This document shows, in pieces, positions 1 to 63,981 of a stretch of 64,000 bases of DNA; position 1 is the first letter of the stretch; every line of letters begins with the position of its first letter. The notes beneath the pieces are model-generated. The model was not told the DNA's origin and made no database searches. It worked only from the letters and a program-made list of their open reading frames with translations. The DNA comes from Calcarisporiella thermophila CBS 279.70 (lineage: Eukaryota > Fungi > Calcarisporiellomycota), in the NCBI RefSeq assembly GCF_041956535.1, contig NW_027192197.1, positions 747,264 to 811,263 of the forward strand, read 5' to 3'. Both the position numbers and the translations under genes were made by a program.

Positions 1-864
1 GACGCTACCTTATCTCTCTCATGTATCGTCTCTGTTTTGTTCTTTTAATAGGTTCGCGCTTGAAGACGCTTCAGACCTCTTGCTCTCGGGAGTGCCGCCG
101 GCTGCCCCTCCCGGGATTGGTTGAACTCAATGCGAGCTCTCCTCATCGCACAGCGAATATTCGGTGGAACCTCATTTTACGCTTATTACTTAAATTTATT
201 AGGTGCTTAGCTTTGCAATCTTAACCGCTTCGCAGGTTACCGGGTGATAACGGGCGATTAGGTCCCAAGGCAGGCCGCCATGCATTGTGCGGAAGGCGAG
301 ACTGGAAGGGAGATGGCCCGGCTGGATGGGTACGAAAAGAAGCCGCAGAGCAGCTGAAAAAAAAAAAATAAAGCAAATAAGCGGCATGCGTTAGGTGGCA
401 AATGGCCCGTGGGAGATACGCCTCACATTAACAACGTGCCAGCCTGGCAGCAAGGGGGGAGGAAGGTGAACCGCCAAATGCAATATAGGGTATTTTTAGA
501 CATTAACATTTTGGATTATTAATTAGGTAACGCTGTTCCATCTCATAATTTATGACGGCCTCGGACCCTGTTTGAGGCTCTATATGGACATTCAGCATAA
601 TGTTAACACTTAACCACGCCCCAATGATACATCCCCAAACATTGCCGTGCTCTGATTGGTTCGCAGTGATGGTCTTTTCTCGAAAAATACGATTTTGGGC
701 TGAAATGAAGGATAAATGTGCCAATCCCATTGCTTTCGCCAAGGTGCGGTGCCGAGCCGACTTCTGCCCATATATATTATGCTGGACCCGAAATTCCCGA
801 ATTTTCGTTTGAGATAAAATAAAACTTAGAGAATTGGCCTTCTCCCCATTGACAACATTAAGAA

Positions 865-61272: not shown

Positions 61273-62927
61273 AGTTTTTTGTCAGTTTGAAAGCATAATT
61301 GGACGTGAAATATTTTGGTATAAGATATAATCTGAAATTTATCCTAAAAAATTTTATCAATGCCAGTACTAGAGATGTGAACAGGACACGCTCTAGGAAC
61401 TGTGCTATAGGCTACTTCGTTACAACTCCCCAAAAATTGCAGTAAAATGCGTCAATGAAACTCTTCAGTATATACTTTCTTCTTATTCTGTATCTTTCTC
61501 GGTACAAGCAATTCCTCTCTACAAGGTTGGCCAGGAGCATTACCCGAGTGATTTTAACGTAGAAGTCTACCCTTCTTATAACTTGCATAAGAGACTTTTC
61601 AATAAAGATTCTTAAAAAAATTTGTCATCAAATTACCCCGCTCATTCGTGAAACCATACCAGATAGAATGAATACAGACAATGAGACCGAGAAGTCAGAG
61701 AAGAAACAAGAAGATACCAGTTAAATATCCAGTACTCCACAGGTAAATGCATCGAACATCAAACCTCTAGGATCCAAAGTATTCATCGAAATAACCGGAT
61801 TTGAACTATCCATTGTGCCAGCCAAGGGGAGCCTCGAAGTCAAAAATAATTCTATTATCAAAATGCTTTCAACTGCTCATAGCCATATATTTTTATAGTT
61901 TATCATTGCTCCTTCCTTTATGTTTTTCTTTTTTTCTTTTCACCCCTTTTTTTACATTTACTCCTTTATTTCATGTACATAAAACACATATTTCAATGTT
62001 GATGCATACCAATCCTTTTTTTTTCATTTTCTTTTCCTTTCAAGGAAGGTCAGGATCACTACCTGAGTAATTTTGATGAAGAAGCTAGCATGCCTAATTC
62101 ATTTCACTATGATACTTTACAATAATAATCCGTAGTTTAAAAAAATTATCAAAAATTGAGAAGAACGGTGCTACTCTCAAATGCATCTCTCTACCTAATC
62201 TACCTCTTGCAATCAAAAGACACTGGCTATTGACAGAGAAAAAAAAAAAATATGAAGTGGGATTCAGGCAGAAATGGGAAAGAGCTAACACAGCTTACAC
62301 ACCCAAAGCGGGTAAGTTTCATAATCAGCAAGAGGCGGACTTAATCATTGTGGAAGGGTGAGATATTTTCAGAGATACCAACAGAAGGAAGAGGGCATAG
62401 GCCGGGTGATAAAGGCGCATATCAGAGCCCAAGTACAGGATTCTTCGTTAGAAACTTCTAAAACATAAAATATTTACCGTTATCATCACGAGTGAGTAGA
62501 CTAGAGAAGCAAATACTTGTAAAAGATGTTCTCAAAGAATACCCCAAACCATTGTACGCCCTTCTTGAACTGCCCGGCCATCGTTCATATCAAAGAGTCG
62601 ACGAAACAAGCCATCGAATAGTTGGCATATCTCCGTACAATTCAATAAGGGAAAATAGCTGATTTGGTCATGGATTGAGCAAGTAAAAAGATCAACCCGT
62701 TAACAAAATCGATCAAGGATAAAAACGGTCTCATATGATAGCTCTTTAATCAATACCAGGCAGCCTGAAAGTATTTTAACCTTTTGAATAAGCCCTAGAT
62801 GCCAGGTAACTTGAAAAAAATTTAGGGTTCTATACAGATCATAATCTTGTTACCTATTATGACATAAAACTTAAACTAATGATTCAAAAAAAAAAAGAAA
62901 ACTTCGTTTCAGAGGCAGAAAAAACAA

Positions 62928-63000
62928 CGAGCGTACCAGGGGTCGAACCTGGAATCTCCTGATTCGTAGTCAGGCGCCTTATCCATTTGGCCATACACCC
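62928..63000 (-). tRNA. tRNA-Arg (ACG)
   Basis: GGGTGTATGGCCAAATGGATAAGGCGCCTGACT-ACG-AATCAGGAGATTCCAGGTTCGACCCCTGGTACGCTCG, followed by a T-run terminator. Confidence 0.95.
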
Positions 63001-63014
63001 AAAGATCTCCATAG

Positions 63015-63729
63015 TGTTACGAGATAATTGGTTTTTGTACGGGGAAGTCACCTTGACAGTCACATTGACTCGAGAGCCCAACGGGGGAGGGTTAGTGTAG
63101 TGGACTATCCCTGGGATGCCGATGAGAACGGCGTGGGTTCGAATCCCACCTCCCCCACCAGCACTTACTCTTAGCTTGTGACTGCTATCCACTTGATCAG
63201 AAGCAGAGTCTTGATTATTGAAAAGATTGCCCTTAAGATAAGTACAAAAGATTACATCGGTTTCACGTACATGCTATTCACGACAACTACGATACACGCA
63301 TATCGATTGAACGTCTAGCGATCAAGGACCTATATCTCGTTATGTTAAGTCCATTGACATTAACTTCATGTAATATATGGAAATTAAATAAAAGTTTCCA
63401 TTGATTGATCAAAAAAAAAAATTCAGGAAGCGCGATATCTTTAAAGTGGAGCAGCCAATAGAATTGTTTACCGCTACGTTGCCGACCCCTCGTGGTTACT
63501 TGCCGCCCTCGGGGTTACTCTTATGCTCCCTCATGGTTACTTTGTTGAGGTTGATTGCTATTTTGTTGGTTTACCTTTGTTTATCCTTGAACACCAGTTG
63601 AGCTATTTCCTTTATCTCTTAATTCTATTTAAACCCTTCTATTTTGTTTTACTGTTCCTCACCAATCTCTTATTTTTATTATTAAGGAATCCGCACAGCT
63701 CTCCACGAAATCTCCCTTTGCCTGTAACA
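63015..63729. mobile_element. LTR-like insertion (solo LTR or small non-autonomous retroelement, possibly composite) 14 bp upstream of tRNA-Arg
   Basis: Termini TGTTAC...GTAACA flanked by the direct repeat ATAG (63011-63014 and 63730-63733); no coding capacity. Confidence 0.65.
63083..63160 (+). ncRNA. tRNA-like element with encoded CCA and no anticodon loop
   Basis: 7-bp acceptor stem GGGGGAG/CTCCCCC + A + CCA, T-arm GTGGG-TTCGAAT-CCCAC, A-box TAGTGTAGTGG, B-box GGTTCGAATCC, variable-arm hairpin GCCG-7nt-CGGC. Confidence 0.75.
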
Positions 63730-63733
63730 ATAG

Positions 63734-63981
63734 TGTCTTAACTCGAGTCACATATCAAGCTATCCCAACGATATTCAAGCTCCGACATTAATTAGGAACT
63801 AGTTATAAACCAGTATTCATTAGCTTTATTAGTTAACAGGTTAAATAGTTATTATATCTTATAGTATAAAAGGAACACTCTAAGGAGAACTTCTAAGATA
63901 CATACCTTGTTCTTGAATAAACCTTTAGTTTTACCTATGTTCCCCGAGTATCCCCTAGTTATCTCGCTCTAGTTTATGACA
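63734..63981. mobile_element. Second possible solo LTR, followed by a third TGTTACG start at 63984
   Basis: Termini TGTCTTAA...TTATGACA form an imperfect inverted repeat; no clean TSD. Confidence 0.35.

Follow-up and report, generated by a model that had tools for sequence, protein, structure and literature searches.

Fungal genomes are known to harbor tRNA-derived short interspersed elements (SINE2 type), such as MgSINE, Foxy, and AfuSINE2. These elements combine a tRNA-related head containing A and B boxes with a noncoding body, a LINE-related 3' tail ending in poly(A), and target-site duplications (TSDs), in copy numbers on the order of at least 100. For AfuSINE2 of Aspergillus fumigatus, a "CCA end" of the tRNA-related region has been annotated (PMC5063351). 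TRE5-A of Dictyostelium and other dictyostelid elements are poly(A) retroelements that insert at a near-fixed distance upstream of tRNA genes and in opposite orientation to them (PMC5911963); in the table of a 2018 review, the non-LTR elements that target tRNA genes come from dictyostelids only (PMC5911963). Among LTR retrotransposons, Ty3, Tj1, and Ty3-like elements of Yarrowia integrate at Pol III start sites (PMC5911963). Finally, Helenus (TRIMp3) carries tRNA-like Pol III-type sequence within its LTR; it has been proposed to arise by insertion of a SINE into an LTR (Kojima 2024, PMC10886601), and its fungal families generate 5-bp TSDs (PMC10886601).

Here, we analyzed a 64,000-nucleotide stretch of the genome of the early-diverging thermophilic fungus Calcarisporiella thermophila (the window). 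Among the publications listed as naming this species, none appears, judged by title and abstract, to deal with its transposons. The window contains a 715-bp element running from TGTTAC (position 63015) to GTAACA (position 63729), which encloses a tRNA-like unit. A sequence-only reading had taken this unit for an integral part of an LTR element. Our analysis revealed instead a SINE lying within a solo LTR, and thereby documents a young SINE family together with its partner LINE in this fungus. The family is new but of a known kind. Like the fungal SINE2 elements, it has a tRNA-related head, a LINE-related tail, poly(A), and TSDs. In contrast to MgSINE, Foxy, and AfuSINE2, however, its head is remodeled: the anticodon arm is missing, the A-box hairpin is extended, and a short hairpin adjoins the T arm. 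This remodeled fold is common to several families, and insertion is position-specific upstream of tRNA genes.

Results and Discussion

A poly(A)-tailed element with the tRNA-like unit as its head

The tRNA-like unit comprises 78 nt (63083 to 63160, plus strand) and begins 68 bp inside the LTR element. Reading of the sequence confirmed this offset and most of the previously proposed parts: a 7-bp outer (acceptor) stem (GGGGGAG paired with CTCCCCC) followed by A and then CCA, a D-like stem (TAGT/ACTA), a 5-bp T arm (GTGGG/CCCAC) with the loop TTCGAAT, and a hairpin (GCCG-ATGAGAA-CGGC) adjoining the T arm. In the A box (TAGTGTAGTGG, 63093 to 63103, plus strand), 10 of 11 positions fit TRGCNNAGTGG. 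The B box (GGTTCGAATCC, 63136 to 63146, plus strand) fits GGTTCGANNCC at all 11, and the two boxes lie 43 nt apart. An oligo-T terminator had been reported to be absent, in agreement with our finding that the sense strand of the whole SINE is free of T4 runs. The perfect seventh acceptor pair is a peculiarity of the window copy; position 68 is T in 30 of 37 copies, which yields a G.U pair. The folding energy of the window copy was unexceptional (z = -1.64; 12 of 200 shuffled sequences were as stable).

The idea of an anticodon arm collapsed to ATCCC-T-GGGAT had to be abandoned. Such an arm would have a loop of a single nucleotide and would share A25 with the D-like stem. Of 25 distinct sequences, 10 cannot form its C27-G33 pair, and G33T, present in 8 copies, disrupts the ATCCC/GGGAT palindrome without compensation. 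The place at which a canonical tRNA has its anticodon arm contains no 5-bp stem with a loop of 7 nt. Neither ARAGORN nor the Rfam tRNA model called the unit a tRNA, even at E values up to 10; within the window, the two reported only tRNA-Phe and tRNA-Arg. The sole Rfam match over the unit at E values up to 10 was to the 3' end of the tmRNA model and was subthreshold, as was a 17-nt T-arm match on the opposite strand.

A genome search with the 715-bp element revealed that the abundant repeat corresponds to query positions 69 to 407 only. More than 35 copies matched this segment with 95 to 99% identity, running from G1 of the unit to a stretch of 8 to 14 A residues. In the window, this repeat occupies 63083 to 63421 (339 bp) on the plus strand. 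The tRNA-like unit forms its 5' head, composed of the outer stem, an A-box hairpin, the short hairpin, the T arm with the B box, A, and CCA. It is followed by a body (63161 to 63357) that begins with GCACT...CTGCTATCCACTTG, a core common to related SINE families, by a 3' tail ending in ...AAAGTTTCCATTGATTGATC (63358 to 63410), and by a poly(A) stretch that reads as A11 (63411 to 63421). No open reading frame (ORF) above 48 amino acids (aa) was found within the SINE. Using a covariance model of the head, we detected at least 124 heads in the 28-Mb genome, so that a single-copy unit can be dismissed.

TSDs of 10 to 17 bp flank the SINE exactly and were clear in 13 of 17 copies outside LTRs. The last ∼60 nt share 84 to 86% identity with the 3' termini of further poly(A) elements, among them LINE copies and other SINE families. 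At one locus (L057), such a tail is preceded, at a distance of 76 nt, by the end of a LINE ORF2 with a zf-RVT domain (E = 2.7e-8); ORF2 of this LINE is known here from its C-terminal end alone. Comparisons between copies were based on 37 full-length SINEs plus a handful of older heads. The dispersed, short, and noncoding copies with their A/B-box head, TSDs, poly(A), and LINE-shared 3' end thus exhibit the anatomy of a tRNA-derived SINE mobilized by a LINE via target-primed reverse transcription. We conclude with high confidence that 63083 to 63421 is one copy of a young family of this type and that the tRNA-like unit is its head and no part of the LTR. The family is probably active.

Several additional observations were made during these searches. 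ARAGORN labeled some SINE heads as "tRNA-???" (with a 2-base anticodon) or as tRNA-Thr(agt) with extra 5' bases (e.g., L011:1573-1648), and such heads could be misannotated as tRNA genes in the genome. Elements of ∼309 bp that consist of a LINE ORF2 end and 3' untranslated region were present at L015:2017-2325 and at least 15 other places. They begin at one common base and are 97 to 98% identical, and represent either a discrete nonautonomous derivative or a hot spot of 5' truncation. A metagenome scan with a degenerate head/CCA/core pattern yielded a single match (L092), an ordinary tRNA-like gene with an encoded CCA and without a SINE body, which is unrelated.

SINEs within LTRs are independent insertions

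The sequence surrounding the SINE is a solo LTR, split into a 5' part (63015 to 63082, plus strand, TGTTAC...) and a 3' part (63422 to 63729, plus strand, ...GTAACA). Throughout its length, the 3' part shows 92 to 97% identity with four other copies, among them the SINE-free L035 and L036. From about position 36 onward, the 5' part corresponds to the "...GACTCGAGAG" type seen at L009. The 715-bp element is flanked by a 4-bp target duplication, ATAG (63011 to 63014 on the left and 63730 to 63733 on the right). Duplications of the family were likewise 4 bp at other loci (GACT, GAAA, GGAA, and GTTT).

Searches with both LTR parts retrieved SINE-free copies at L035, L036, L037, L038, L040, L042, L044, L048, L051, and L053. 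These are ∼345 to 370 bp long, and position ∼51 to 56 joins directly to position ∼408. Conversely, the SINE travels mostly outside LTRs, with TSDs of its own. The previous assignment of the tRNA-like unit to the LTR is therefore untenable: what remains of it is a tRNA-derived, nondecoding Pol III-type module with A and B boxes, whereas its role as an integral LTR component is contradicted by the SINE-free LTRs.

SINEs that do reside in LTRs have their own TSDs at slightly differing LTR positions (L002, L003, L004, L005, L009, L011, L012, L016, and L018). At L011 and L002b, an identical SINE/LTR junction was found at different tRNA genes, with SINEs of different subfamilies. Since TSDs and SINE subfamilies differ, the LTR-borne SINEs are independent insertions. 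Joint mobilization of LTR and SINE as a composite was considered and ruled out by the differing TSDs and junctions and by the different subfamilies at L011 and L002b. In 265 kb examined, no primer binding site (PBS) complementary to the 3' end of the unit was present outside the antisense strand of the SINE itself, which speaks against the suggested self-encoded reverse transcription primer. Two-LTR copies with such a PBS, which had been proposed as a check, were equally absent from these 265 kb, in which LTRs occurred as solo or stacked copies only.

Solo LTRs frequently formed head-to-tail stacks upstream of tRNA genes, with the same 4 bp as the TSD between them (L035, L036, L040, and L053). 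This arrangement indicates that integration recurred at precisely the same site.

In the window, further LTR-like starts were noted at 63734 (TGTCTTAAC...) and 63986 (TGTTACGGGG). The LTR types at L009, L011, L016, and L018 have only the first ∼60 nt in common with window positions 63015 to 63076 and are unrelated beyond. The common start reads TGTTACGAG..GGTAC..AAGTCAC..CAGTCAC..TCGAGAG.

SINE and LTR insert at defined distances upstream of tRNA genes

A tRNA-Arg(ACG) gene is located next to the LTR on the minus strand (62927 to 63001 by ARAGORN; Rfam tRNA, 61.5 bits at 62928 to 63000). The LTR starts 13 to 14 bp and the SINE 81 to 82 bp upstream of its 5' end. This geometry was common among the sampled loci, about half of which were retrieved via LTR matches, so that the following counts are biased towards tRNA genes. 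Of the 37 full-length SINE copies, 19 had their 5' end in the zone 76 to 110 bp upstream of a tRNA gene, with 17 at 76 to 87 bp and the other two at 97 and 110 bp. All 19 were oriented head to head with the tRNA gene, and 14 different anticodons were represented. In this tRNA-biased sample, the SINE thus combines a fixed distance with a fixed orientation upstream of unrelated tRNA genes, as TRE5-like elements do. The distance of ∼76 to 87 bp differs from the 40 to 54 bp of the dictyostelid elements, the host is a fungus, and the rider is a Pol III SINE. On the sampled loci, these data support targeting of tRNA genes by a LINE/SINE pair in a fungus.

The LTR family behaves similarly. Of 34 LTR starts, 19 were found upstream of a tRNA gene at a distance of 8 to 22 bp, always in one orientation, showing that the family integrates at this distance from tRNA genes. 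The position of the TGTTAC...GTAACA LTR relative to mature tRNA 5' ends, its single orientation, and its stacking at the same site are reminiscent of Ty3, Tj1, and the Ty3-like elements of Yarrowia; unlike these, the present family was seen as solo LTRs only in the loci sampled. Because SINE and LTR both measure from the tRNA gene, SINEs repeatedly land ∼55 to 75 bp inside LTRs. An LTR start at approximately -13 and a SINE landing at approximately -81 lead to an overlap of ∼68 bp into the LTR, as observed in the window. The apparent oddity of a "tRNA inside an LTR" hence dissolves into the collision of two tRNA-gene-targeting retroelements at one address.

A recurrent motif, ATGGCGCAGTAG(G), was noted 25 to 35 nt from SINE 5' ends, in the upstream flanks at L013, L021, and L030 and in the downstream flank at L020. 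This motif probably marks the terminus of a further repeat family in the same zone upstream of tRNA genes.

The 3' half of the head resembles tRNA-Leu

The proposed likeness of the unit to tRNA-Leu was borne out for its 3' half. The 20 to 21 nt preceding the 3' strand of the acceptor stem are identical to resident tRNA-Leu genes, with GGCGTGGGTTCGAATCCCAC as the stretch identical in tRNA-Leu(AAG/CAG), and the best true-tRNA matches to the head model were all four tRNA-Leu genes in the searched loci (20 to 23 bits). The 5' 50 nt of the unit yielded no alignment with tRNA-Leu or with ∼35 other resident tRNAs sampled; hence, the unit is not a simple deletion derivative, as which it might have been explained away. 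The encoded CCA and the sharp start of the copies at G1 are compatible with a head that was once copied from a mature tRNA-like RNA. Most simply, the CCA would be a relic of this event. CCA is also a known antideterminant of tRNase Z (PMC3161902), and this inhibition offers a testable reason for the SINE to keep it encoded.

The head fold is maintained between families

Changes private to single copies occurred at 0.45 per site in the head and 0.29 per site in the body among the 37 copies. Since the head changes at least as frequently as the body, inserted SINE copies decay neutrally, and the intact pairing of the window copy, earlier read as a sign of selection, is no evidence of it. Shared variants affected a somewhat smaller fraction of sites in the head (8 of 78) than in the body (43 of 250; p = 0.16), and no shared variant fell into the A or B box.

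We also compared the related head families, designated F1 to F5. F2 is represented by L041, an element of 302 bp that is flanked by its own TSD and located ∼81 bp from a tRNA gene; F4 by a ∼125-bp mini element (L054) and by L036; F5 by L007, L046, and L056; and the decayed F3 by L017. A common plan was recognized across the families, consisting of an outer G/C stem, a long A-box hairpin, a short hairpin, and a T arm, followed by A, CCA, and GCAC; F1, F2, and F4 have retained ACCA and the subsequent GCAC. Independent ViennaRNA predictions yielded essentially the same plan for F1, F2, and F4 (z, -1.95 to -3.2). Of the F5 copies folded, L007 broadly fits the plan and L046 does not, nor does the decayed F3.

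When 26 distinct heads were aligned under guidance of the model, 96.5% of the cells were paired, versus 51 to 60% with partners slid. Across F1 to F5, 7 of 20 pairs had changed on both sides, compared with 1.7 ± 1.1 in shuffled alignments (0 of 500 reached this value) and 1 to 3 in slid controls; these figures derive from an alignment fitted to the structure of the model and from families that are few and related. The check for compensatory changes proposed by the sequence-only reading accordingly turned out positive at the level of families: with this alignment, four helices of the remodeled, anticodon-less fold are indicated to carry compensatory changes across at least four related SINE families. 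Positions 6 and 7 can be read as an extension of either the acceptor stem or the A-box helix; both versions are ∼90% paired, with no decisive covariation.

The F4 mini-SINE of ∼125 bp (L054:∼395-520, minus strand) consists of head, short core, poly(A), and a TSD, CAGATATACTACCCAG. It lies beside several short A-tailed fragments that repeat this TSD.

Alternative explanations and a putative life cycle

Several explanations other than a SINE inserted into an LTR can be weighed against these data. A Helenus/Cassandra-like TRIMp3, in which the unit would be the integral Pol III promoter of a nonautonomous LTR retrotransposon and spread by the LTR-type route, is suggested by the location of the unit, which lies within an LTR that has terminal inverted repeats and a 4-bp TSD, by the junction that L011 and L002b share at two tRNA genes, and by the resemblance of the locus to the first step of the SINE-into-LTR origin proposed by Kojima 2024 (PMC10886601). 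However, SINE-free LTRs are common, SINE-in-LTR junctions vary by locus, and even the one shared junction involves SINEs of different subfamilies. While Helenus likewise contains tRNA-like Pol III-type sequence within an LTR, the SINE described here keeps its own poly(A) and, elsewhere, its own TSDs; the 265 kb examined contained no unit-linked pair of LTRs, PBS, or polypurine tract (PPT), and the LTR produces 4-bp TSDs instead of the 5-bp TSDs of fungal Helenus. We therefore regard this explanation as very improbable and already largely refuted; the SINE/LTR collisions nevertheless supply the kind of starting material that has been proposed for Helenus-type LTR elements. The chance that a resident tRNA-Leu gene gave rise to the unit by decay into a pseudogene or by simple deletion, with no connection to any mobile element, is next to nil. 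The identity of GGCGTGGGTTCGAATCCCAC to tRNA-Leu(AAG/CAG) and the 20- to 23-bit matches of the head model to tRNA-Leu are consistent with such an origin, but the 5' 50 nt align with neither tRNA-Leu nor the ∼35 other tRNAs, and the copies, at least 124 in number, always occur with the same body and poly(A) and with TSDs. Copy number and structure thus refute it. It also seems improbable that SINE heads serve as portable landing pads, whose Pol III complexes would draw further insertions of tRNA-targeting LTR elements, LINEs, and SINEs. One orphan SINE (L019) has an LTR-like end (..CGTAACA; ∼1837-1870) 21 to 22 nt upstream of G1 and pointing away from it, a geometry like that at tRNA genes, but this is a single case among 37 copies. 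Moreover, no head-to-head pair of SINEs ∼80 bp apart was seen, and repeated insertion at the same tRNA-defined site accounts for the tandem SINEs.

A further proposal adds to the SINE interpretation and does not replace it: the head may be selected as an RNA module and not only as a DNA promoter, its four-helix fold setting an RNase P-generated 5' end and its CCA blocking a tRNase Z cut that would sever the head from the body and tail. Covariation over F1, F2, F3, F4, and F5, the architecture predicted independently for F1, F2, and F4 and broadly for one of two F5 copies, the retention of ACCA-GCAC in F1, F2, and F4, the sharp start of copies at G1, and the inhibition of tRNase Z by CCA (PMC3161902) all speak in favor of such a module. 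Against this, the alignment had been fitted to the structure of the model and drew on a small number of related families; much of the sequence is fixed by the A and B boxes alone; differences in the T arm could reflect exchange with real tRNA genes; and inserted copies show no constraint. Both the selected module and the processing roles assigned to fold and CCA are consequently put forward as tentative. The head fold and its CCA provide a concrete case in which to test if selection acts on SINE heads as RNA structures or on their DNA promoter function only. In its broadest form, the proposal would be that a fungal SINE superfamily keeps a remodeled, anticodon-less tRNA mimic with CCA by compensatory change since the RNA fold is needed, and that its heads may also seed Pol III "safe-haven" sites; we consider this version rather doubtful, slightly more so than the module itself. 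Possible needs for the fold include a 5' end trimmed by RNase P, protection from tRNase Z by CCA, and recognition by tRNA-gene-targeting LINE machinery.

For the SINE inserted into an LTR, a life cycle can be sketched from sequence features. The A and B boxes of the head would recruit TFIIIC, TFIIIB, and Pol III, and transcription would pass through the body and A-tail and end at a run of T residues in the flanking DNA. The reverse transcriptase of the LINE would then recognize the shared 3' tail and copy the SINE RNA by target-primed reverse transcription, at insertion sites presumably marked by the Pol III complex of a tRNA gene, as in Dictyostelium TRE5.

The window copy, its inverted twin, and their surroundings

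The window SINE has no TSD of its own, and its LTR flanks differ in type: the left flank is of the type seen at L009 ("...GACTCGAGAG"), and the right flank is of the common type seen at L035 and L036. At L002, two stacked LTRs each carry a SINE in the same orientation, i.e., the intact precursor arrangement. Recombination between two such SINEs would yield exactly the structure seen in the window and, given the missing TSD and the flanks of two LTR types, is its best explanation. The presence of ATAG at both outer ends is compatible with repeated integration at one site. Alternatively, the structure may result from exchange with an inverted twin 3 kb away (G000:C7:813390-813728; L010; L031:3891-4229). 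This twin is the nearest relative of the window SINE (98.8% identity over a 328-nt alignment; BLAST and repeat search gave 98.8 to 99%). In its 3' flank, it contains GACTCGAGAGCCC, a motif of the 5' flank of the window copy. It is located 83 to 84 bp upstream of tRNA-Asn(GTT) and also lacks a clean TSD.

Between the retroelement stacks at tRNA-Arg and tRNA-Asn, two long overlapping ORFs of 541 and 629 aa are present on opposite strands (L031:1719-3608; from window position 63955 onward and mostly beyond the window); neither had a Pfam match. The AAA protein adjoining the window is ClpX-like and not Hsp104.
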